DNA of 64,000 bases, taken from positions 2,914,001 to 2,978,000 of the forward strand of contig OX337238.1 in the NCBI GenBank assembly GCA_946965045.2. The letters are read 5' to 3'. Below the pieces are notes generated by a model. The model did not search any database, was not told the DNA's origin, and was given only the letters and a program-made list of their open reading frames with translations. A program made the position numbers and the translations under genes. This stretch comes from Epithemia pelagica (taxonomy: Eukaryota > Protista > Bacillariophyta). Shown piece by piece: positions 16,908-39,281 of the stretch (within the stretch, counting starts at the first letter, position 1; the number at the start of each line of letters is the position of its first letter).

Positions 16908-18300
16908 GGTAGATTCAACACACACACCAACAGAGAAATGAGGATGCGCGTGTTGGAAGTTGGAAGCCTTTGTACAGTCGGAATGACAGTCATACACTCC
17001 CTCTTATACAGTTTCTCGTCTATGGATCGGTCCATCCGGTTGGCATCCGAGTCCCGAGTCACAGAAGTACTTTCGCGACGATACTCGCACCTCTCTATCG
17101 TCTCAGACGCCCGCGACTCCATACACCCAAAAAAGAATCCCCATCGCGCGCGCATCTCATCGAGATCCTGGTTGGCAGAATCACCATGACGACCTATACA
17201 ACGACAAGGACAAAACGACGGCCAACACACATTCGCACGGTTCTGTCAAGAATGATGATGATGATGATGATCGAGTGACGGTGTCATTCTTCCAGACACA
17301 CTCACTCGGTGCATCCTTCACAGTGTACTAGAACGAGCGATGATGAGGCTATAATGATTGATATCGAGACCAAACAACAGAAAGAAGAAGACTCTTGATT
17401 GAAGCGGTTAATGCTTAATTGTGATGGCCTTCATCATCATCATCACACCGAAAGAGAACAAAAAAGTCTCTCACTTTTTCTCCGACAACACAGCGTGGGC
17501 CTATAGAGTGCAATCCAATGTGGAAGAAGAAGAACACAACAGAGGACCCAGCAATCGGCCTGAGAAAGATCATTGGTGAAAACGTACGAGATGCTTTGTT
17601 GTGATGGTCTTCAAGATTGGAGAAAGAGTCCTGGTCCCTTTCTTATGGGTATTTGCCCTGTGGTATTTGCGCCGGTTGCATTTATTATTGTTCTTGTCGC
17701 TTCCCTACGTACGGTGGGTGATTTTCCTATCGTGGGTGCCAATTTCAAGTGATCTCGATAGAATGGCTTCTAGCATTTGTTGCATCTTCTTCGCGTTTGC
17801 CGGTTTGGGACAATCATGTTTGATCGATGATTGGATTGGAACCTATGAATTTGGTCCGCTTCGTTTTGCATGGACGATGAACTAGCGCTTGACTGCGATC
17901 CTGATGTATTGTGCAAAACAGCCAGAAGGAATTTGAAAAGGGCCTCAAGACTGCAACGGACAAGTACTGCCATATACAGTGGCAAAGGGGTTCCAAGAAA
18001 GTGGAATCTCTGGATTTGTGCGGGGGTGGCTTTGTGGTGGATGGTTTTAGACCCGTTTATCTGTCCAAGATCATCCATCAAAGGAGGATGGTTTTGAACC
18101 CGTTCATCTGTCCAATGCCATCCCTCCGATGAAGGATACCATGATTGAAATCGCCATCGTTGAGGTGCGTCCGTCGCAGCTGCCGTCTTTCGTTCCGGTT
18201 TTGGTGTAAAAGGTCCAGATCTCGTTCGGAGTTCATTTTCGTATTTTTTGAGGAGCAAGAAGGTCCATTCCTTGCTGTTGTCATGAAATCTCAAAGTATC

Positions 18301-24186: not shown

Positions 24187-24230
<44 letters not shown>
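24187..24230. repeat. (ATG)n microsatellite, about 14 units
   Basis: Direct reading. Homologous positions in other units carry only about 4-6 units. Confidence 0.9.
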
Positions 24231-24281
24231 CGAGTGACGGTGTCCATCCTTCAGACACACTCACTCGGTGCATCCTTCACA

Positions 24282-24342
24282 AAAAAAATTTGAATCTATT
24301 TTAACGCTGCCGCGCGGACCCACTCTAACGCCTGGGGTGCCG
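24282..24342 (-). mobile_element. 5'-truncated 61-bp stub of a LINE related to the adjacent element
   Basis: Flanked by TCGGTGCATCCTTCACA at 24265-24281 and 24343-24359. It shares an A8 run and TCTATTTTAACGCTGCCGCGCG.ACCC with the 3' end of the full element but differs elsewhere. Confidence 0.75.
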
Positions 24343-24505
24343 TCGGTGCATCCTTCACAAAAAAAAGGGTACAGTCTATTTTAACGCTGCCGCGCGCACC
24401 CGCTAGGGTGACGTCGACCGACGCGCCCGGCTCCACACAAAATGAGGAGCGAGGACTAAACGTGACGGGACAAGTTGTGAGGACGGGACAGAGAGTAGAA
24501 ATCGG

Positions 24506-27500
24506 TTACAAGGGTGGGGCAGCATCCCTGAGAATGACAGGGCGCCAGGTATTGATCCAAGAGCGAAGAGAAACAGCAGTAGTTTCCGCTGCGAAATGAG
24601 CAGCGGGAGACGAGTAGAAAATATCGCGTTCAGAGGGAGGGAGACGGGTGCGGAATTCGTATAAAGTCGTGACCTCGCGTTGTGCTTGGGCGTAAGATGC
24701 GGCTTCAACTGTTTGGGGTGAATTACCATGGAGGTTGTGATTTCGGGTGATCCATAGAGCATGGATGTGTTTCCATAAGAGTTTAATTGTGCCAGTAACA
24801 AAATGAGTCCCGGAGACTGTACGTGAATGTTGATGGTTGGTGGAGAGATAGTTGTCTTGAAGATTGCGCCATTGAATAGTGAAGCGGCCGAAAAAGATGA
24901 GAGCATATCCGATAAGTTGTTGTTGAGTTACCAGCGATTGATATGAGAGGGAGAGGGTGGGAAAAGACGGTGGAACGTTGGCGAGCCAAGAGTGAATAAT
25001 TTCCGCAAGTAGTAGGTTCAGAGTTGGGTCGAGGGATTGGAGACGCCAGAAATCTTGCAGTTCATCCAGAAGAGGTCCTTTCCATTGTCGGTGGGGACAA
25101 CAAAGAAAGTGAGTGCGAGTCTCGACAACAGAGGGAGTGCAGAGGGGGCATGTTTCTGTGTAGTAAGTGGCATAACGAGAACGAAGATAGCCAAGAGGAA
25201 GCCAATCATGGAGAAACTTAATATGGAATTGTTGACGGGGGAAAACAGTCGTGATAGCGCGTCCGTGTGCCGTCCAATCAATCATCTCGAAAGTCTCGGA
25301 CGACCACTCGTTGCGATTGCATAAGTATTGGCGTAAAGCTTTCCATGTAGAGAGGTAGCGCAGAATAGATCGGTAATTCGAATTGATAGTCCCTTTGGGA
25401 GAATGAAGTATGGCTTGGCTGCCTGTGATAAGAGGGACATGTGTCGATGAGATAGTAGGCGGGTATTCGTATGAGTCTGCCAATCGGTCAGCGTCTACAT
25501 TGAGCTGGGCAGCAAGGGTCAGTGTTGGATATGGTCGCAGACGATCTTGGTGGCCCCGAACATGTAGGAAACTTGGAGTTTCAGGGAGTTGTCTGATAGA
25601 TGTACTAATCGATTGTTGTATATCCCAATCTGCTTCCATCGTAGAGTATGGGAAGTCATAGACCCATTCCAGTCGCTTTGCCACGGTATTGATCAAACTT
25701 TTGGAATCGGTATAGAAGATTAATTGTGTCGGAAGACTGAAGCCATAAGACGTCGTAAGATGAATCACAGCACGTAGCAATGCAAGCATTCCATAACTCT
25801 CCGACCTGAAAGACGAAGTACGATAACCAGGAGCAGGACCGCTTAATTGAAAAAGGCGTTGTCCAGTATCCGTGCTGCAAATACAGCCAAATTTGCCAGT
25901 GAACATAGCCGCTGAGCCATCGCTGCACAAGAAGAGGCGGACAGTCGGAGTGGCGAAGCTTTGTTGGATTTGTTGAGGTGGGCAAAGGAGGACAAGTTTG
26001 GACATTAGGTGTTGATCCCACTGTTCGAGAGAAGAGACGTAATCGGGAAAAGTCTGGGGTGGTGGTGGATCGGAAGGTAAGGCTTGAGGACGGCAAGGCA
26101 GAATAATGAAAGCGGGACCGGAGTGGTTGACATGAACGGGCACTGCTGTCGATGGGGGACTTGGAGAGAGTTGAGACGTTGGAAGAAAAAGTGGGTGTTG
26201 GTACCAGTAGTGTCGAAAACTATTGGGAGATTCGGCCACATAGAGTTTGGAGCTCGGGCAGTCAACTAGGAATTTCCAATGGCGATGTAATTTCTGTCCA
26301 GGTACAGTCCAGGAACCGAGAGGGTGTGTCAGCATTCGTGTGACTCCTGTCTGTCTGACTAAGTCAAGGTATTTGTCCCACTGTTGCCAAGCACGGGGAC
26401 CTGGCCGGTCTTGGTACGGAATCAGACCGTGATGAGTCGAGAAATCGTCATGGCGATGTTCAATGGTAAACAAAGAGAGTTTCGTGCCATCAGGAGTTGA
26501 TACATCACTGAGCAATGTCACACCCAGATAGATACGGCATGCATTGAGCAGAATCAGTTCCGTTGGAGTGAATTGTGACGACTCTAATGCGATATCCATG
26601 AGGAAACGATCGTTGACTCGTTGGAGGGCGGGAAGGAATTTTGATTCAAGTTCAATGTTGCAGTTTGCTTTGTGGAGGAAGGTTCGCACTTGTGGAATCC
26701 ATTGTATCGGTACCAAGTGTGGCAACGGTGTCTCGACATCTTCAAATATGGAAATGCTAGTACCCGCGAGAAATTGAGCCCACGAGATCGCGATCTTGGC
26801 AAGTTGTGCCGGAACTCCTGGTGATCTGAGACACGCTAGCAGTAGGTAAGTCTGAGAAATTCCACGCTCCACTGAAAGTGTTCGCAGTCCGATTCCTCCT
26901 AATTCTGCTGGTCCGTAGACGACTGCATTTGGCATATGGCGATTGAAGCCATACTTGGGTAAAAAGGCTTTCTTGAACTGGACTTGTAAAGCATTGCAGT
27001 GGGCATCAGAGAGGGAGGACGATGGTAGCGGGTATGATATGCTAGGGAGGTAGATAGCATGGTAATAGGCCCAGGCGTCGGTTCTGGAGAAAGGGCTGGT
27101 GGCCATCACTGAAGTATGAGCTTTGTTCTTTTTCGCAAGAGCGAGGTATAGCCCTTTATCTGTTCGATGTGGCGATTTCTGTACACCCAAAGTCTTGTGA
27201 CTCCGATAGGAAGATAGTTGTTTGATCGGTATTGTTTGGTCCGAATCATGGAAGTGAATTGTAATTTGAGGTCCGAAGGTTCCAGATTGTAAGGACGCAA
27301 GCCCATCCACATTGAACGTGTAATACAAGAAGTGATAGGAGCATTTCTCGACATTAAGTGCGCCTCCAGACAAACTAAGCAAGTCGTTCCATCGTTGTGC
27401 GTCTTCTTGTGCCTTGGCAATGTAATGTTCTGGCGTTGCTGGTTGGTCGCGCGAGAAGTCATTGACGCTGCCGCTGGTATCATCCACAAACCCGATCATG

Positions 27501-30500
27501 TGTAGAGCAGTTTTCACAGAACCATCAGGGCTGCTAAACATAGCGCCATGTGCTTTGTCCTCGTAGGTGTCAAAGAGAATCGTAGAAATGACACACCAGA
27601 TTGCAGGTGAGTTGCCGGCTCCTTGTCCCGAGCCATATATAGGGTACAATTGGCAATGTTGGTAATGCCGTTCAGACACTCCGAGCTGTGTCTTTAAATA
27701 GTACTTGGCTTCTTCCAATGTCTTTGCGTTGATAAAGACGATCGACCTGTGTTGGCCAAAGCTTCTAGACGCGAGGCTTCCGAAGGATAAGACGATCCGG
27801 TCGTAGCAAGCGGTTGCATCATAGTCCAGGTGGACTAGTGGCCGCTTGCTAGCTCTTGATATTTCGTATTGAAGTTCTTCGCATAAGGTCGGGATTACAG
27901 CGTCTCTACCTGGGACTCCACCAAATTGCATTGGGTGCAGAGTTCGTTGATTGGTATTTAAGTGTATGAGCTGGCGCCACTTGATCGCCAGAACAAGGTT
28001 GTAGTCTTGTTCATAAAGATGGATGACACGAAGTCGATGGATCCGTAGATTGTTCGGTTCTTTCAGTATCGTCACATTGACAATGTGTTTCCACCTGTCG
28101 TACGAGTATTTGTTGACGAGTGCGCAATTTATTAGCCCGACTTGCCACGCGATGATTTGTTCCCTCTTTTCCTCTAGTTCTTGACCTTCGTCTGTTGTTG
28201 TGTCTAGGTCGTGAGAAGCCACCAATGCTTTGCTATGGCTAAGGTGAAAGCCGGATGGAGACGTTGATGTGGACTCTGGCCATGCTTTGATTTTGCCAAC
28301 CCATTCCTCGACGGTGATAGGAGCTGGAACAGCGTCAAGTGTAACTCGAGCCTTCATGTGATTGATGAGCGATTGCTGCATTTCATCAAGTTCCGGCCGT
28401 TGCCAATTTCCTTCTAATATGAGCTCTGCCGTATGAGTTGACTCCCCCCAATCGCACCATTCCGAGAATGGTGGTTTGGTGGGAAAGGTATTATGTGCTT
28501 GTCCAAAGTGGTGTCGGTTTCTGGTGAGCAATCGATCTTCTATTTCCGCGGGAGTATCGATAGTAAGCCATTCCGTGCATCCACTGTAGTCAGTCGTGGT
28601 AGGATCGGCTGGAACATCGAGTCTGGTTATGCCCGTTTTCAAATTACCGCGGCATTGTCTGAGCTTTTTATACATCGCTTTCGTGCGTTCTGCTGCAATC
28701 CGATGCTTCAAAGCTTTTGATTGTTGTTTATTCCCCTCGAGAACGGCTTGTTGGAGCTCATCTTGCAGGGCATTGTGTCTTCGCTGTACTGCATCCTTCG
28801 TCATCTCGCGTATCTGTCGCTGAACCACTCTGCATTCATGCTGACAAGCTTCGAGGGTGTGGGGTATATTGATCACAGACTGATTGCGGGTAGTGTATGC
28901 GATTCCCGACTCAAAAGATTTACCCCATTTCTCTGCCGATATCAATTTCAGTAGGAGATTTTTGCGTTTCCTGAGACTGGCTAGTTGCTTTATGAATGGA
29001 ATACTCCTCGGTTTCTTTGCACATCTTCGACTTGCATGCTCGCCTGCTCGTTGAAAATCCTTGTCCAGACGTTCTGCGAGTCTTGGGTTCCAGTTCTGTT
29101 TCAATCGCTCAAGTCGCTGTGGAAAATTGTGCTCAATCAAGAACTTGTGTTTGTGGATGAGATAGTTTCTGTTTGAGCTTTTATCCTTGCTCGTAAAATC
29201 GCGGCTTGCAATGGGACCCAGTGTTTGAGTGGCGTTTCCGAAGAGTCTTTCGACATCCAAGTCTATTACCATGTTTCGATGGTCGTTTGGTATCTCTCTA
29301 TGTTGAAAGGGTTCGTAGCATGCCCTGACGACTGATGTTGAGACATGTGTTGTGCCCAAAGCGTAATCGATGCGTTCTTGTCCGTTCACAAAGGTAGCAA
29401 AAGACGTGTCACCGATCTGTTCTCCCATTAGGTCGTGTAATTCTAACTCGGTGCAAAGTTTTGACATTCCCTCGTGGATATTGGATAGTGCCTCGTTGAA
29501 GTCGCCCAATAATAGAATTTCTGAGTTACGGGCGCGGCGCTGTCGGATGAAGTCTGTCAGATCCGATATAAAAGCTTCGCGTGGAGACATTGATCTGTTC
29601 TCCTGTCGGAGCATTGAAAGCTGTTGTGCTGAGGCTGTGAAAGATCGAACTCTGTTGTTGTTTTCAGTCAATAGTGCTTGTTTGCACACTTGGTACGCAG
29701 AGACGACGGTGAGAGTTTTGTTGTTACGGCAGGAGAACACTTGGTATGACCACCGTCCCATTCTGTCTGTGCCTTGTTCCGTGATTCTTCCTGTCGATTT
29801 ACCTTGCGATGCGATCAATGTGCCTCCGGGCTTGTAAGGAGTAGGTCTTGGTGATGGAATGTTAGTGCTACCGAAACTGAGTCTTGAATGTTCGCAATGT
29901 TGTTGGATTGTAGAATGGAGCATGTTTCGGACTTGAGCTTGAGTAGTGTCTACGTTCGTCTCATAAAAACACCACGTGTCCGCGTCAAGACGATTCAATT
30001 CTTCGCAGTACTCGGCAAAGGTACCTCCTCTTGACATCAAAGTTTTGAATCCGTTAGGGTTGCATCCAAAGATGCGATATACATTTGCTGGCTTGACATC
30101 TTGTGTTTCCGGCCCAATAAATTCGTCTGTCGCGTAAACCATTCCTGGCGGGTGGATATGGATGCCATTCTCTGCTTGTTGTAGTATATCGCCGTCGACG
30201 CTCTCGACATCGTCGTTGTTCGTGTTGACTGGGATAGTTGTTTGTTGTTGGTTTACATTGACACGCAAGGCGTCATCGTTGTTCGGGTTTGCTGGGATAG
30301 TTGTTTGTGGTTGATTGGCGTCGACACGCAGGGCGTCGTCGTTGTTTGGGTTTACTTGAATTGTAGTTTGTCTTGGTGTGTCGTCGGCACTCGAGGCGCC
30401 ATCGTTGTTTGGGTTTGCTGGAATAGTAGTTGTGGTATTGGTGGATGTGTTGTCGTCGACACTCGGGGCGTCGTCGTTGTTTTCTAAATCCTGATCGGTT

Positions 30501-30601
30501 GTTGGAAGGGAATGACGTATGAGTAATGCTAGTGGATGTGGTTGTTGTCGCAATGAATTGTTGGTTAAATTTAGATTGCTATCATTCACCATCTCACTCA
30601 T
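24506..30601 (-). CDS. LINE ORF2 polyprotein (2031 aa): APE endonuclease, reverse transcriptase, RNase H, C-terminal Cys/His motif
   Basis: APE motifs: RIFGCNPNG, PGGT, LLGDFN, RIDYAL, DHR. RT motifs: QFGG, LDYDATACYDRI, GSGQG, GFVDDT. RNase H motifs: SDGSA, RSESYG, YTDSKS, HVRGHQD, NVDADRLA. Zinc-knuckle-like CPLC...ETRTHFLCC. Confidence 0.95.
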   Translation of the reverse strand: MSEMVNDSNLNLTNNSLRQQPHPLALLIRHSLPTTDQDLENNDDAPSVDDNTSTNTTTTIPANPNNDGASSADDTPRQTTIQVNPNNDDALRVDANQPQTTIPANPNNDDALRVNVNQQQTTIPVNTNNDDVESVDGDILQQAENGIHIHPPGMVYATDEFIGPETQDVKPANVYRIFGCNPNGFKTLMSRGGTFAEYCEELNRLDADTWCFYETNVDTTQAQVRNMLHSTIQQHCEHSRLSFGSTNIPSPRPTPYKPGGTLIASQGKSTGRITEQGTDRMGRWSYQVFSCRNNKTLTVVSAYQVCKQALLTENNNRVRSFTASAQQLSMLRQENRSMSPREAFISDLTDFIRQRRARNSEILLLGDFNEALSNIHEGMSKLCTELELHDLMGEQIGDTSFATFVNGQERIDYALGTTHVSTSVVRACYEPFQHREIPNDHRNMVIDLDVERLFGNATQTLGPIASRDFTSKDKSSNRNYLIHKHKFLIEHNFPQRLERLKQNWNPRLAERLDKDFQRAGEHASRRCAKKPRSIPFIKQLASLRKRKNLLLKLISAEKWGKSFESGIAYTTRNQSVINIPHTLEACQHECRVVQRQIREMTKDAVQRRHNALQDELQQAVLEGNKQQSKALKHRIAAERTKAMYKKLRQCRGNLKTGITRLDVPADPTTTDYSGCTEWLTIDTPAEIEDRLLTRNRHHFGQAHNTFPTKPPFSEWCDWGESTHTAELILEGNWQRPELDEMQQSLINHMKARVTLDAVPAPITVEEWVGKIKAWPESTSTSPSGFHLSHSKALVASHDLDTTTDEGQELEEKREQIIAWQVGLINCALVNKYSYDRWKHIVNVTILKEPNNLRIHRLRVIHLYEQDYNLVLAIKWRQLIHLNTNQRTLHPMQFGGVPGRDAVIPTLCEELQYEISRASKRPLVHLDYDATACYDRIVLSFGSLASRSFGQHRSIVFINAKTLEEAKYYLKTQLGVSERHYQHCQLYPIYGSGQGAGNSPAIWCVISTILFDTYEDKAHGAMFSSPDGSVKTALHMIGFVDDTSGSVNDFSRDQPATPEHYIAKAQEDAQRWNDLLSLSGGALNVEKCSYHFLYYTFNVDGLASLQSGTFGPQITIHFHDSDQTIPIKQLSSYRSHKTLGVQKSPHRTDKGLYLALAKKNKAHTSVMATSPFSRTDAWAYYHAIYLPSISYPLPSSSLSDAHCNALQVQFKKAFLPKYGFNRHMPNAVVYGPAELGGIGLRTLSVERGISQTYLLLACLRSPGVPAQLAKIAISWAQFLAGTSISIFEDVETPLPHLVPIQWIPQVRTFLHKANCNIELESKFLPALQRVNDRFLMDIALESSQFTPTELILLNACRIYLGVTLLSDVSTPDGTKLSLFTIEHRHDDFSTHHGLIPYQDRPGPRAWQQWDKYLDLVRQTGVTRMLTHPLGSWTVPGQKLHRHWKFLVDCPSSKLYVAESPNSFRHYWYQHPLFLPTSQLSPSPPSTAVPVHVNHSGPAFIILPCRPQALPSDPPPPQTFPDYVSSLEQWDQHLMSKLVLLCPPQQIQQSFATPTVRLFLCSDGSAAMFTGKFGCICSTDTGQRLFQLSGPAPGYRTSSFRSESYGMLALLRAVIHLTTSYGFSLPTQLIFYTDSKSLINTVAKRLEWVYDFPYSTMEADWDIQQSISTSIRQLPETPSFLHVRGHQDRLRPYPTLTLAAQLNVDADRLADSYEYPPTISSTHVPLITGSQAILHSPKGTINSNYRSILRYLSTWKALRQYLCNRNEWSSETFEMIDWTAHGRAITTVFPRQQFHIKFLHDWLPLGYLRSRYATYYTETCPLCTPSVVETRTHFLCCPHRQWKGPLLDELQDFWRLQSLDPTLNLLLAEIIHSWLANVPPSFPTLSLSYQSLVTQQQLIGYALIFFGRFTIQWRNLQDNYLSTNHQHSRTVSGTHFVTGTIKLLWKHIHALWITRNHNLHGNSPQTVEAASYAQAQREVTTLYEFRTRLPPSERDIFYSSPAAHFAAETTAVSLRSWINTWRPVILRDAAPPL
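30200..30485 (-). repeat. About five 63-bp (21-aa) tandem repeats at the ORF2 N-terminus
   Basis: Translated units of the form NNDDALRVDANQPQTTIPANP. Confidence 0.8.
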
Positions 30602-32575
30602 GATTGCATGCTCGTGTTGGCCAGGGACCCGTCCGCGTGCAAGGACGGGTTTGCCTGGACCATGCTCACGTCAAGCTTTGGCGTGGCCGGTTGTTCAGAG
30701 TCGTCTTCGATACGCCTTTTCATAGGGGCTTGACTCTGGTTTTCATGGTGGTTTGCATTTTGAGATGCAAGTGCCGTTTGATGAGGAGGGTTGTGATGAA
30801 CTGGTGTTTGGGGCAATGGCATATGATTTGGCGGCATATGTTGATGATTCGCAGGGGTTGGTGGATGTTGTGGCCACAAGTTGGTTGGCATTGGTTGTTG
30901 TTGGTGTGGGGCGTTGACTGGGCTCATATTAAACTGTGGTGGGGCCTGATATTGGTATTGAGGAGAGAAGTTCTGTGGCGGCATGAAGTTCTGTTGCATC
31001 ATCATTGACATTTGATGTTGCATCGCTTGCATCATTGACTGCATCATTTTGTTTTGGGCGGATTCGTGGTTTTCCTCTTGTTTCGTGACGAATGATTTGA
31101 ATGCATCTTTTAATTCTTTCAATTCGTTTTTAAGGTCCACGTTTTCTGATTTCATGCGTTCGTATTCTTCATTGGTGACTTGACTTGTTGAGGTCTCTGT
31201 CGTCGTTGATGTGACTACTGTCTGCACCGGTGCGACCATTTTCCACGCTTGAGCAACAGGCCTTGTCCTGCTTGGTGGGTTTGTGTAGCTCTCGTTCGTG
31301 TCATCACCCAACTCGTCGGTCTCGTTTGCAGTGTGCAAAGAGTTCAATGCTGAAACATAGGTCGCATAAGAGCCTCCATGGTCCGTCGATTCGTCGTCAT
31401 GTCCGCCCGTTCCTTGGCCGTATCCTTCATGTCGAAAGGCTAGTCTTGGTGGTAGATCGAATTCCTTGGGATTGAGTCCACGCGCACTGCGCTCTGCTAT
31501 CACTAGCGAGACTATAGAGACTCTCAAGGCACTCTTCAGGTTTTCAAAGTGCTTGTCGGTTGTGTGGACATTAAAGCGTCCAATACGGTCTGAGTCTTTG
31601 TGTCCGGTAACTCTGATCACGCCTTCAAATTGATGAATGATCCTGTCTTTGAGAGACCACATGATGGATGGGTGCACTCCTGCAATTGGTATGATCCGAC
31701 TTGAGTTGAGATACAAGTTCTGATCTTGTAGCAAATTGCAATACGTCTTTTTGTCATAGAAAAATAAACTTCGGATCTTGGACATAAGTTTCTTGGAGCA
31801 ATTCGAGTAGTGCCTTGGCGTCGTGTTGGCGGCATTGTAAATCAAACGCTTTGGTGTTCCACTTGTTATCTCCGTCAAAGAGAATTGGAGAGGAGTAATT
31901 GCACTTGAACTTGGGGATCTTGTTTCTCGGTTTATTTGTCTTTTCGATTATCTCCAATATGACTGACTCGATCATTTCTTCTTGCGGAATGTTACTCGGG
32001 TCGTAGCCCACGAAGAATCCTAGATTCGCAATTCTCGTCTCATTCTCATTCCAGAGGTGCTGTGTCATTTTCGCTTTGACAAGCTTGAGCCTTTCCTGTA
32101 CAGCAGAGTGGCGACGTATTTCACTAATGGATACCTTTGATTGGAACCTGTGAATGACGATATACATGGGCTTGCGTTTCTTCGATTCGTTTCCCTTCGA
32201 GTAATGGAGGTCGAAATGTCGTAGGTACGCCGAGTATGTCTTGAGTGCTTCCAATTTCTTCCTGTTGAGCTTCGAACCTCTGTTGTCAAATATTTTTACT
32301 TCCGGATAAACTTGAGAAATCGTATACAGCGTGTCGTAGTGGAGTTTAGCGACGTTTCCGTTTTGGTCTTCTTCAGGTCGAAACACAAATTTGATTGTGT
32401 ACTCCTTTTCTTCTCCTTCGTACGGTATCGGATGATACACAGTGGTGATCTCAGTGCTTTGGCTTGCATCGTCATCGTTGTTGTTAGAGGCATTTGCTAA
32501 GTTGTTGTTGGTAGTGGTCGGTTGAGACTCCGCCATAGGGGCGTCGTTTGTACCGTATTGAGGTTCTTCCGCCAT
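30598..32575 (-). CDS. LINE ORF1 (about 660 aa if joined), split by a +1 frameshift near 31755-31765
   Basis: ORF 31754..32575 ends ...QDPKFIFL*, and the overlapping ORF 30598..31878 continues YDKKTYCNLLQDQNLYL. It has a coiled-coil-like EEYERMKSENVDLKNELKEL segment and a Q/M/P-rich tail, and lies directly upstream of ORF2. Confidence 0.75.
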
Positions 32576-32746
32576 GGTCGACGTGGATCTTGCACCAATG
32601 ACAATCGAGCTTTCGGGACACTTTCTGGGATTTCTTACACGATAAAACTACGGGGAACCAGAAACTATTGGACAGATTACACGTAGGACTATGCCTTTCA
32701 ATTTCGTCTGCCCACGAAATTGTTGTCGGTGCATCCTTCACAGTGT

Positions 32747-33031
32747 TGTCGGAATCAAAGAATTAAGTCGCTCTTCATGTCGTGATCCCGAAGTGGTCGC
32801 ACATCCAAATCCTTGGGATAGAAACCGCATGGGAGGCGGTTATAGATCACCTAGATCTTGGATGATTTCGATCTCAACTGGCACAACAACAACTCCCATC
32901 TTGGACATCACTCTAGTCGTAGCACTCACTCTTTCTAGATCGATCATTTTGAAAAGTAATTCGTCTACATTTACATCTCTATTGCTTCTGTGCACGGAAG
33001 ACTCCATTTGGGCCAATCTAGTGATCCAACA
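32747..33031. mobile_element. Solo LTR (285 bp), probably Ty1/copia-like
   Basis: Termini TGTCGGA...TCCAACA (TG...CA imperfect inverted repeat) and a 5-bp duplication AGTGT at 32742-32746 and 33032-33036. Absent from the homologous sites at 17322, 38304 and 45362. Confidence 0.75.
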
Positions 33032-35374: not shown

Positions 35375-37882
35375 TCACCTCAAGTAATCACTTTCTGTAG
35401 TTGGTACGATCTTTTGTAACACAAGAAACGACCCATGCGGGCTGGTTATAGCACAAGCGAACGAAAAAAGTCGGTCTGGTCTTGGAAAGAGCATGCTCCA
35501 AATGGTGCACAAATCATACGACAGGCACTGGCAAACTGTCACATAAAATTCATGCGACACTTGGTGTTTGATCCAGAGACGAATCGTGACATCACAATAG
35601 TCGTACCATGCCAAATCCTTCATGACAATGGGTGCTTCTGGAACATGACACCTTTCTTTGTCCTCGTCCTCGTTACGGATGCAACTTTCGGAGAGACTAT
35701 GGTGCAAACAGCATTGTATGTGGTTGGTATTCTGACAGAGTTGATCGACACGACGTGTCTGTTCCATAATCTCCTGGTGAAACCACGATTCCAAAGAATG
35801 AGGCTCCGAAACGTCGTCCTGGAGGTACTCATTGGCGTGTATTCGTGAAACTGTCGATCCAGCACCGCTCTTCATGGTTGGAACGGGGGATTCCTTCCTT
35901 CCATTTGGACTTTGGTCCTCCACCACGACCTTTGAAACGTCTTGTTGTTCCAGATCCACGTCCCAGGACGTGGAGTGCGTCGTGTCTCCGGCATCGGACG
36001 ACGACAAGACAAGGGACGGGGGAGACTCCCAGTCAATGCATTCCTCTTCATCTCGATCCGAATCAAAGACAATACATTCTTCTTCATCACGATCCGAATC
36101 AAAGACAATGCACTCTTCCTCATCATTATTATCTTTTGCAGTGTGGTTGTTCCTGTTTGGGTGACAAGGGGACACTGCCAAAGAAGAATGCGGACTCCAG
36201 ACATTGGTCATCCAGAATAAGGGCGTTCCCACAGGATTATTGTCCTCGTCATGAGAATCAGCAGCAGCATTCTTTCCACGACCAAAGGTGTGGTCGTCCC
36301 CCAACAGAGGAGCTGACTGATGTCGTAGCAGCCGGCGTGGCAGGACCAAGCCGGTAGTTTCCGAATCGTTGTTCTCCTTCTTGTGAATCTGGGCCAGAAA
36401 AGGCAAACACGGCACGGACGTTTGTGTACCATGCCTCGTACAAACGTCACCTCTCGTGTCGCTCGTGTCGCTACTGTCGCTGCTGTTGCAAGTCCAGCGA
36501 ATGGATTGGGGGGCCACCACCAAGGAGGAGGATGACGATGAGGAGGACAACGACGACAGTGAGGATGAATTCGAATCCAATCGTTGATGGTTTCGACTGA
36601 TGGACGACGACAAGACGGTTGTACTGGTAGCACTGTTCGGGACGATCGTGGGTGTCACGTAATTGTCGTTGTTGTTCTTCTTGTTGTCGTTGTTGTTAGG
36701 AGGGTCGTCGTCTTGCAGTTGTGGCTGTTGAATGTCACATTCCCCATCGTGGCCACCTGTATATGGATCATGGTCCAAATGTTGGTCGTTGTCGCCATCT
36801 CGAACCGAATCCATCACCTCGGGTGGTGGTGGTGGTGGTGAAACTGCGTTGTTCTTGTTGTTGTTGTTCTTGTCGACTATGGGAGGATCTTGTGGTGGTG
36901 CCTCCTGTAGTTTGTCCTGAATGCTTGGTATTAAGAAATCAGATGTAGAGGCATTGCGATGGGTGGTGGTTTCCCCCAACTCTCTTCCTCTCATCATCAT
37001 CACCGAGTGCAAAGCCTTGTCGTGTTCTTGTTTTGTCATTCGACACAACCGATCAATCTGGACTTGCTGCTGACGTACCGCCATGCTTCTTGTTGTTGGT
37101 GTTGCTGTTGGTGGTGGTGGTGTGGTGGGAGTGAACCTCTTGGGTCGTCTTTGGGAAGGGGTTGTTGGAGTGTCGGTGGGAGCATCTCCTCCTCCTCTTT
37201 CCTCATGGACGATTGCCAAGGATGAAGATCCAGGAGGAGGAACACATGGATCCAGGCAGGGTGGTTGGCAGTCCTCCTGCTGCTGATGGAGTACGAACGA
37301 GTTGTTGCTGTCGGTAGATTCCGTTCCAGAACAAGTAGTGTCTACATGCCACAAAGAACAAGAGGAAGAAGAACCACAAGAATCCTCCTCCTCAGTGTTT
37401 GCGTGTGGATCTTTTGGCTGCTCTTGTTGTGGTTTGGGGGGTGATTGCTGTTGTTGTTGTTGTTGTTGTTGTTGGGGATTGGAAGAAAAGGAGCAGAACC
37501 AACACCCATGACAACCACCAGCGTTGTCAACAAGAGGATCGTATTGAAGAAAGGGTTGTCGGCATCGTCGTCGTCGTCGTTTCGAGAGTTTGTTGTTGGG
37601 AGTGCTGCTGTGGCTGCTCCTCCTCCAAATCAATTGGACACGTCGTCGACGAGGACGACGCATGGCAGATGATTGGTAACGACCACCACGACAACAACTC
37701 CGACAACACTGATCCTCATCCGGTGGTTGCCATTGGTTGTTTCGTGATGATGTTTGTTGTTGTTGTTGTTGGAGCAAGACGACACTTTGGGTCCAGGCCT
37801 GCCACAAGTTGTAAAAGGCGACATTGTCATCCTGATTGGGCTCCACCACTGCCACGGCAGAACCCTGCGAGGAGGATGTCAT
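35375..37882 (-). CDS. Uncharacterised X-family protein (about 835 aa), only uninterrupted copy
   Basis: Long open frame (the track starts at a GTG at 37972; the first homologous ATG, MTSSSQG, is at 37882). It has low-complexity Q/S/N/D tracts punctuated by motifs conserved across diverged copies, and a Cys/His/aromatic-rich C-terminal region. No known domain recognised, and expression is not shown. Confidence 0.6.
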   Translation of the reverse strand: MTSSSQGSAVAVVEPNQDDNVAFYNLWQAWTQSVVLLQQQQQQTSSRNNQWQPPDEDQCCRSCCRGGRYQSSAMRRPRRRRVQLIWRRSSHSSTPNNKLSKRRRRRCRQPFLQYDPLVDNAGGCHGCWFCSFSSNPQQQQQQQQQQSPPKPQQEQPKDPHANTEEEDSCGSSSSCSLWHVDTTCSGTESTDSNNSFVLHQQQEDCQPPCLDPCVPPPGSSSLAIVHEERGGGDAPTDTPTTPSQRRPKRFTPTTPPPPTATPTTRSMAVRQQQVQIDRLCRMTKQEHDKALHSVMMMRGRELGETTTHRNASTSDFLIPSIQDKLQEAPPQDPPIVDKNNNNKNNAVSPPPPPPEVMDSVRDGDNDQHLDHDPYTGGHDGECDIQQPQLQDDDPPNNNDNKKNNNDNYVTPTIVPNSATSTTVLSSSISRNHQRLDSNSSSLSSLSSSSSSSSLVVAPQSIRWTCNSSDSSDTSDTRGDVCTRHGTQTSVPCLPFLAQIHKKENNDSETTGLVLPRRLLRHQSAPLLGDDHTFGRGKNAAADSHDEDNNPVGTPLFWMTNVWSPHSSLAVSPCHPNRNNHTAKDNNDEEECIVFDSDRDEEECIVFDSDRDEEECIDWESPPSLVLSSSDAGDTTHSTSWDVDLEQQDVSKVVVEDQSPNGRKESPVPTMKSGAGSTVSRIHANEYLQDDVSEPHSLESWFHQEIMEQTRRVDQLCQNTNHIQCCLHHSLSESCIRNEDEDKERCHVPEAPIVMKDLAWYDYCDVTIRLWIKHQVSHEFYVTVCQCLSYDLCTIWSMLFPRPDRLFSFACAITSPHGSFLVLQKIVPTTESDYLR

Positions 37883-39281
37883 GGTAGATTCAACACACAC
37901 ACCAACAGAGAAATGAGGATGCGCGTGTTGGAAGTTGGAAGCCTTTGTACAGTCGGAATCGCAGTCATACACTCCCTCTTATACAGTTTCTCGTCTATGG
38001 ATCGGTCCATCAGGTTGGCATCCGAGATCCGAGTCCCGAGTCACAGAAGTACTTTCGCGACGATACTCGCACCTCTCTATCGTCTCAGACGCCCGCGACT
38101 CCATACACCCAACAAAGAATCCCCATCGCGCGCGCATCTCATCGAGATCCTGGTTGGCAGAATCACCATGACGACCTATACAACGACAAGGACAAAACGA
38201 CGGCCAACACACATTCGCACGGTTCTGTCAAGAATGATGATAATGATGATGATCGAGTGACGATGTCATTCTTCCAGACACACTCACTCGGTGCATCCTT
38301 CACAGTGTACTAGAACGAGCGATGATGAGGCTATGATGATTGATATCGAGACCAAACAACAGAAAGAAGAAGACTCTTGATTGAAGCGTTTAATGCTTAA
38401 TTGTGATGGCCTTCATCATCATCATCACACCGAAAGAGAACAAAAAAGTCTCTCACTTTTTCTCCGACAACACAGCGTGGGCCTATAGAGTGCAATCCAA
38501 TGTGGAAGAAGAAGAAACCAACAGAGGACCCAGCAATTGGCCTGAGATAGATCATTGGTGGAAACGCACGAGATGCTTTGTTGTGATGGTCTTCAAGATT
38601 GGAGAAAGAGTCCTGGTCCCTTTACTATGGGTATTTGCCCTGTGGTATTTGCACCGGATGCATTTATTATTGTTCTTATTGCTTCCCCACGTACGGTGGA
38701 TGATTTTCCTATCGTGGGTGCCAATTTCAATTGATCTCGATAGAATGGCTTCTAGCATTGTTGCATCTTCTTCGCGTTTGCCGGTTTGGGACAATCATGT
38801 TTGATCGATGATTGGATTGGAACCTATGAATTTGGTCCGCTTCGTTTTGCATGGACGATGAACTAGCGCTTGACTGCGATCCTGATGTATTGTGCAAAAC
38901 AGCCAGAAGGAATTTGAAAAGGGCCTCAAGACTGCAACGGACAAGTACTGCCATATACAGTGGCAAAGGGGTTCCAAGAAAGTGGAATCTCTGGATTTGT
39001 GCTGGGGTGGCTTTGTGGTGGATGGTTTTAGACCCGTTTATCTGTCCAAGATCATCCATCAAAGAAGGATGGTTTTGAACCCGTTCATCTGTCCAATGCC
39101 ATCCCTCCGATGAAGGATACCATGATTGAAATCGCCATCGTTGAGGTGCGTCCGTCGCAGCTGCCGTCTTTCGTTCCGGTTTTGGTGTAAAAGGTCCAGA
39201 TCTCGTTCGGAGTTCATTTTCGTATTTTTTGAGGAGCAAGAAGGTCCATTCCTTGCTGTTGTCATGAAATCTCAAAGTATC

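Follow-up and report, generated by a model that had tools for sequence, protein, structure and literature searches.

Two stacked LINE insertions and a solo LTR at one spot in a Kelch-gene array of the diatom Epithemia pelagica: a probable case of double insertion

Introduction

How do two related retrotransposons come to occupy exactly the same target site? We have investigated this question at a locus of the diatom Epithemia pelagica contained in a window of 64,000 nucleotides (GenBank assembly GCA_946965045.2, contig OX337238.1, referred to here as contig 11, positions 2,914,001 to 2,978,000 of the forward strand), in which a very short stub and a full-length copy of a long interspersed nuclear element (LINE) stand in tandem between window positions 24265 and 32742. 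The initial annotation proposed that this arrangement could reflect a new, target-specific LINE lineage of the apurinic/apyrimidinic endonuclease (APE) type that uses a gene array as a safe harbour. Our analysis favours a different origin: the locus was probably produced when a diatom LINE family of the APE type, one without site specificity, inserted twice at one spot through separate rounds of target-primed reverse transcription, a process termed double insertion. On that reading the locus is a new instance of a known process, situated beside a solo long terminal repeat (LTR), and shows cleanly, in a natural case from outside the animals, how double insertion can make transposons tandem. The analysis also supplies parameters for a little-studied diatom LINE family: its target-site duplication (TSD) measures ~17 bp, its nick shows a weak A^G preference, its copies are very often extremely truncated on the 5' side, and its 3' end combines a conserved terminal block, which includes a hairpin, with an oligo(T) tail.

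Structure of the stacked insertions

On the plus strand the locus reads target, 61-nt stub, target, 8,366-bp element, target, with both elements on the minus strand in head to tail arrangement. The 17-mer TCGGTGCATCCTTCACA is present in three identical copies, the first (24265-24281) running on from the native left flank, the second (24343-24359) lying within the tandem junction and the third (32726-32742) bordering the full element on its 5' side. Within these copies the 15-mer GGTGCATCCTTCACA is found with 0 mismatches at 24267-81, 24345-59 and 32728-42, a preceding TC completing each 17-mer. TSD size at this locus is 16 or 17 bp, the final A being indistinguishable from the adjoining A-run. 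The 5'-truncated stub (24282-24342, minus strand) consists of a sense-strand oligo(T) tail and 54 nt of 3' untranslated region (UTR) and carries a TCG microhomology at its 5' junction. The full-length LINE (24360-32725, minus strand) has its 5' end at 32721, a 4-nt filler at 32722-25 and, at its other end, an oligo(T) tail at 24360-66, which is A on the plus strand.

This layout of three target copies around a stub and a full element agrees exactly, in coordinates and in the 17-mers, with that proposed in the initial annotation, and the terminal A8 and ~27-nt core described as common to the two elements were likewise seen in both, their sequences diverging on either side. The A-run is thus present, but on the coding strand it is an oligo(T) tail, because the element lies on the minus strand. 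The 22-nt core TCTATTTTAACGCTGCCGCGCG occurs twice in the window, once in the stub and once in the full element, where 0 occurrences are expected.

The state of the site before insertion is revealed by other units of the array. In the units at 17306-22, 38288-304 and 45346-62 the 17-mer is single and uninterrupted, the next array unit (38288-38304) serving as an example of an empty paralogous target. Genome-wide, the exact 17-mer is found 12 times, all in the contig 11 array: three copies at this locus, three elsewhere in the window and six outside it. None of the nine other copies is duplicated nearby or has an adjoining 3' motif of the LINE among the matches listed, the three in the window being empty and the six outside it single. 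The empty units bear out the earlier description of the target as an array spacer, but the description is incomplete, as the right flank of this locus carries a 285-bp solo LTR that starts 4 bp past the third 17-mer.

Subfamily assignment of the stub

Comparison of the two 3' ends shows that they are not copies of one another. On the plus strand the stub proceeds from its A-run through TTTGAA and the core TCTATTTTAACGCTGCCGCGCG to a further 26 nt, and the full element opens with its A-run and GGGTACAG before the same 22-nt core. The stub differs from the full element in having TTTGAA in place of GGTACAG before the tail, and its hairpin loop is longer as a result of an insertion. Sequences 98-100% identical to the stub are present at C3:3309282 (115 nt) and C11:2297421 (90 nt), and the full element is 97-99% identical to its own kin. 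Judged by its sequence, the stub is derived from a separate, rare subfamily. Local or slippage duplication of the neighbouring 3' end was ruled out as its origin since the stub matches this other subfamily, and the earlier view that the pair represents two family members or two priming events rather than a simple duplication is upheld by a stub of different subfamily having kin at two other loci. The ~27 nt that stub and full element share are explained by conservation of the terminal block of the 3' UTR across subfamilies. The stub subfamily is represented by three very short copies only (57, 90 and 115 nt, including L044 at G000:C3:3309282-3309396), and a full-length source for it was not found in this assembly.

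At the point of truncation the stub subfamily reads on TCGACC where the target begins TCGGTG, so that the shared TCG constitutes a 3-nt microhomology and the TSD boundary of the stub is ambiguous by 3 nt. Microhomology of this kind is usual at 5'-truncated LINE junctions.

Insertion habits of the LINE family

The insertion behaviour of the family was surveyed across the genome (60.5 Mb, 23 contigs) using the 22-nt core, which yielded at least 135 matches at ≤3 mismatches compared with 0 for the reversed control. Of 49 distinct 3' junctions, 44 independent flanks were retained after exclusion of the present locus, of a near-duplicate and of two junctions that lacked an A-run. Across the 20 positions next to the tail, these flanks contain ≤0.14 bit of information per position (position -1 being non-A by construction), and alignment with the GGTGCATCCTTCACA target gives 7-13 mismatches of 14, the closest flank having 7 of 14. 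A logo of such flanks had been put forward in the initial annotation as the check on its target-specific lineage, unrelated flanks being named as the result that would speak against it; no enrichment of the target is observed, and the 44 flanks are unrelated both to the target and to one another. Site specificity on the scale of the family is ruled out by this survey together with the unoccupied target copies. The LINE family is not sequence-specific.

Other aspects of insertion are more regular. In 13 reconstructed empty sites, representing ten full-length copies and three short ones, TSDs range from 13 to 20 bp and are mostly 16-17 bp. The first-strand nick can be placed after an A in 10 of these sites and is followed by G in 9, a weak preference for about A^G with which the present site, TTCACA^GTGT, agrees. 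The second-strand nick shows no clear consensus and falls 13-20 bp away. Extreme 5' truncation is frequent, many matches consisting of only ~60-115 nt of the 3' end. Full copies have 1-4 additional bases at their 5' junctions, mostly of AT type, with GTTG found at this locus. The 3' tail is a homopolymer, oligo(T) on the coding strand, with a modal length of 8-9 and a range of 5-32, and is present at all 47 3' ends read. On the primer strand the nick usually follows an A, a base that would be able to pair with a U-run.

The 3' UTR of the full element extends from 24367 to 24505 on the minus strand and includes the conserved terminal block, with the core at 24375-24396. The last ~60 nt are conserved across several subfamilies that diverge upstream and include a small hairpin, ACCC-loop-GGGU. 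Two hairpins are in fact seen in the 3' UTR (24367-24470 minus strand; loci L001-L060). In the distal one the ACCC/GGGU stem is kept across subfamilies and the loop is variable, and in the proximal one both arms appear to differ between subfamilies, CUCCUCAU...GUGUGGAG versus CCUAG...CUAGG. The proximal hairpin may be the recognition element of the reverse transcriptase (RT).

Double insertion at one spot

Double insertion would account for the locus in two steps. Each insertion would duplicate ~17 bp of target, so that the favoured nick site would survive unbroken and be present twice, and a later event, by re-cutting one of these copies, would generate the order target, stub, target, full element, target. 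In one event 54-57 nt of RNA from the rare subfamily would have been copied before the product was joined through the 3-nt microhomology, and in the other the complete 8.4-kb RNA of the young main subfamily would have been copied. The arrangement is that of double-insertion dimers, both members pointing the same way and the target being present outside each of them as well as between them, and the separateness of the insertions is indicated by the lengths of their products, 61 nt versus 8,366 bp, and by their different subfamilies.

Either LINE event could, we infer, have occurred first. If the stub was first, the second first-strand nick would have been made in unchanged context. If the full element was first, the second-strand nick would have been in unchanged context and the first-strand nick at or in the A-run of the earlier tail, a position which would suit pairing of the primer with a U-run.

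There is a close parallel in Drosophila melanogaster, in which tandem dimers formed by double insertion, with the TSD kept in the junction, are described for P, hobo and the non-specific LINE jockey, and in which the distinct 5' truncations within jockey dimers show that their members arose by separate insertion events (McGurk and Barbash 2018, Genome Res 28:714, PMC5932611). The diatom pair resembles these dimers in its head-to-tail arrangement, the TSD in its junction, the different 5' truncations of its members and the involvement of a LINE without strict target choice. It differs in that its members come from different subfamilies, in the shortness of one of them (61 nt), in its diatom host and in the integration of an LTR element at the same spot. 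Likenesses to human L1 are also evident: a weak-consensus APE nick, a primer end complementary to the homopolymer tail (A with U here, T with A in L1), TSDs of about 7-20 bp, 5' truncation of many copies, and 5' junctions marked by microhomology or filler. In contrast to L1, the diatom family has a short tail of T (mode 8-9) rather than A and an extra RNase H domain.

A neighbouring solo LTR

A third insertion, new in this analysis, adjoins the LINE pair. Past the third 17-mer, the right flank becomes homologous to the empty units again only after 290 bp, and the intervening sequence includes a solo LTR of 285 bp (32747-33031, plus strand; TG...CA, with termini TGTCGG...CCAACA) that has the 5-bp TSD AGTGT on both sides, at 32742-46 and 33032-36. 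The first A of this TSD is the last base of target copy 3, and the LTR starts 4 bp from the LINE nick. Elsewhere the LTR is found at 97-98% identity as pairs ~5.9 kb apart at 5 loci (contigs 5, 9, 10, 11 and 16), with 5-bp TSDs at 3 of the 5 pairs and with primer-binding-site-like (PBS-like) and polypurine-like sequences on the inner sides. The last internal open reading frame (ORF) of one paired-LTR element starts with a weak match to a copia-type RT (RVT_2, E 1.7e-4). On the basis of these LTR pairs of full elements and the RVT_2 match, the segment is classed as the solo LTR of a copia-type retrotransposon, of a family which is young since its copies are 97-98% identical.

The position of the LTR also bears on the order of events. 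The 9-mer TGTTGTCGG at 32721-29, consisting of the filler GTTG and its neighbours, recurs at the edge between GTGT and the LTR at 32744-52, a recurrence with an estimated chance of ~1 in 250 to 1 in 1,000 given the pre-existing TCGG in both places. Judged from this one coincidence, the LTR edge may have been the template of the filler, in which case the LTR would have been in place before the full LINE was inserted. The copia-type element thus probably integrated before the full LINE.

Three insertions have therefore occurred within about 5 bp, two by the LINE and one by the copia-type element, whereas only ~7e-4 LTRs would be expected within 5 bp of any LINE nick (arithmetic on counts). The clustering is real, and scanning of many windows tends to pick out such rarities. 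The spot seems to be insertion-prone, for which open chromatin at a divergent promoter or a structural peculiarity would be candidate local factors, and the three insertions suggest that diatom promoters contain hot spots of insertion on a fine scale.

Alternative origins

Several observations weigh against double insertion as the origin of the LINE pair. Under uniform insertion the double hit goes far beyond chance, the expected number of exact coincidences being ~7.5e-5 (at least 135 3' ends in 60.5 Mb; arithmetic on counts). Restriction to A^G sites raises the number of exact double hits expected among ~135 copies to ~1e-3, so that an extra local factor must still be assumed. Both TSD boundaries coincide, within 0-3 nt at the 5' side of the stub, which asks for distance-set second-strand cleavage or luck. 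A second same-site pair was not found among the ~100 listed 3' ends, and the 44 readable independent flanks represent about a third of the ~135 3' ends.

Two further loci with closely spaced 3' ends were considered as stacking cases and rejected. At L009 (G000:C1:3977321-3980611), together with L088, a 5'-truncated copy of 4.7 kb has close to its tail, at a distance of ~20 bp, a 38-nt stub from a divergent subfamily; the 9-bp TSD of the longer element (AAGCTGATC) is not shared with the stub, which is a near neighbour only. The presence of two 3' ends within 60 bp at L009 hints at local clustering of the LINE family. At L052 the two 3' ends are 916 bp apart and have unrelated flanks.

Coincidence of boundaries would be avoided if all three target copies arose from one pair of nicks in a single compound integration, an origin that we regard as unlikely but that has some explanatory force. 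The first reverse transcription would abort after ~57 nt, the cDNA end would pair through TCG with the opposite strand's 17-nt overhang and copy it, and the primer end ...TTCACA-3' would thereby be recreated at the unsealed nick, allowing re-priming on a full-length RNA and a second copying of the overhang. The identical boundaries of all three 17-mers would then need no coincidence, and the TCG microhomology at the stub junction would be the expected intermediate. Both tails are of length 8, although this is also a modal length, and both subfamilies look young, with 98-100% identity to kin for the stub and 97-99% for the full element. On the other hand, an overhang that had already been copied would have to be unwound and used twice, for which we know of no precedent in any LINE, and to our knowledge reiterated target-primed reverse transcription by re-priming from a regenerated primer end is not described. 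The pattern is seen at no other locus among the ~47 junctions read, and the two RNAs would have to be of different subfamilies, one of them very rare (3 copies). A broader proposition, to which we give a similarly low probability, is that the locus reflects either this single re-priming event or a structurally special DNA site in a divergent Kelch promoter that was hit by two unrelated machineries, the APE-primed LINE twice and the copia integrase once.

Recombination is a very improbable source of the stack. Stub and full element would have been inserted at homologous sites of two alleles or array units and brought together by exchange within the 17-bp repeat, and a tandem array is indeed where unequal exchange is expected. 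However, two independent hits at the same nucleotide are still needed, so that no coincidence is removed, a crossover inside 17 bp is required, and neither insertion is found in any other unit.

The proposal of a target-specific APE LINE that recognises the 16-17-bp spacer, with the gene array as its safe harbour, retains almost no probability. Use of the identical site twice speaks for it, as does a target repeated exactly 12 times within one array. Against this, the flanks of all 44 other independent copies are unrelated to the target, TSD sequences differ at eleven full-length or short copies for which both ends are available, and the other exact targets of the array stand unoccupied as far as the listed 3' motifs show, contrary to the safe-harbour idea. 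The comparison with R1 and Tx1 elements leads to the same result. Tandem R1 copies separated by duplications of rDNA resemble the present pair in reusing one nick position and in having a target duplicate between copies, but those elements have the same flank at essentially every copy, in contrast to the diatom family with its unrelated flanks at 44 of 44 other copies read. A false lead is thereby removed: the locus reveals neither a new lineage of site-specific LINEs nor a safe harbour for them in the gene array.

Equally far-fetched is an assembly artefact, with the stub and middle 17-mer arising from a read end that was wrongly joined or duplicated. Although repeated arrays and transposon ends are error-prone in assemblies, the stub has the loop insertion and TTTGAA variant of a subfamily present at two other loci and its junction shows ordinary microhomology. 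Endonuclease-independent insertion at a lesion was also considered and is unlikely, both insertions having normal TSDs and intact tails.

Genomic setting of the target

The target lies in a divergent intergenic region of ~1.1 kb in an array of Kelch-repeat genes. The array extends on contig 11 from about 2.757 to 3.009 Mb and consists of plus-strand Kelch-repeat genes (Kelch_1, E about 1e-28), of which 13 copies with 60-99% identity are present in the window, alternating with long minus-strand ORFs that lack a Pfam match and reach 865 aa. In an empty unit, the target is upstream of both neighbouring reading frames, by 316 bp for the minus-strand ORF (35375-37972) and by about 840 bp for the Kelch ORF. 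No tRNA gene and no Rfam family was detected anywhere in the 64-kb window, which rules out an RNA gene as the target and confirms the initial description of the site as a repeated intergenic spacer of a protein-gene array rather than a tRNA, rRNA or snRNA gene. Both nicks are located just before GTG within short CAC...GTG inverted repeats. An (ATG)n microsatellite 35 bp to the left of the target (24188-24230) has ~15 repeats, compared with ~7 in empty units (17230-17255 and 38240-38255).

Coding capacity and relatives of the full-length element

The full-length element carries an open ORF2 of 2,031 aa (24506-30601, minus strand) whose predicted product contains an APE endonuclease, an RT with the motif FVDD, an RNase H-like SDGS...D block and a C-terminal Cys/His motif. 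In this copy the Pfam matches to Exo_endo_phos (E 5.8e-5) and RVT_1 (E 2.5e-5) both miss Pfam's cut-off, whereas the homologue P0062 passes it for both domains (2.5e-12 and 1.7e-9, respectively) and several homologues pass the thresholds for Exo_endo_phos, RVT_1, RNase_H and zf-RVT. In an alignment of 16 sequences, the columns that are invariant in the family are all occupied by the same residue in this ORF2. A word search with the RT region yielded 392 relatives of ~1,900-2,100 aa, those with names being from the diatoms Epithemia and Fragilaria, and a protein atlas search returned diatom clusters only. Comparison with solved structures gave no match at the sequence level beyond marginal APE hits to PDB sequences (phmmer; 16-sequence profile).

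The predicted combination of an N-terminal APE and an RT in one ORF marks the element as an APE-type non-LTR retrotransposon. Its family also shows the hallmarks of LINEs, with TSDs of variable length, 5' truncation, no LTRs or terminal inverted repeats, and copies from 57 nt to 8.4 kb that all have the 3' end in common. The Ambal-like affiliation suggested in the initial annotation is doubtful because RepeatMasker writes 'CRE-Ambal', beside CRE, as against the N-terminal APE found here. A literature search on Ambal returned almost nothing, the papers giving only the clade name.

The ORF1 region (30598-32575, minus strand) comprises two overlapping frames, 31754-32575 and 30598-31878, and a Pfam search of it gave no match. 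The split into two overlapping frames is also present in the sister copy L074, and the region is arranged differently in L075. The stop of the second ORF1 frame overlaps the ATG of ORF2 (ATGA, 30598-30601), an overlap that would be a possible termination-reinitiation junction.

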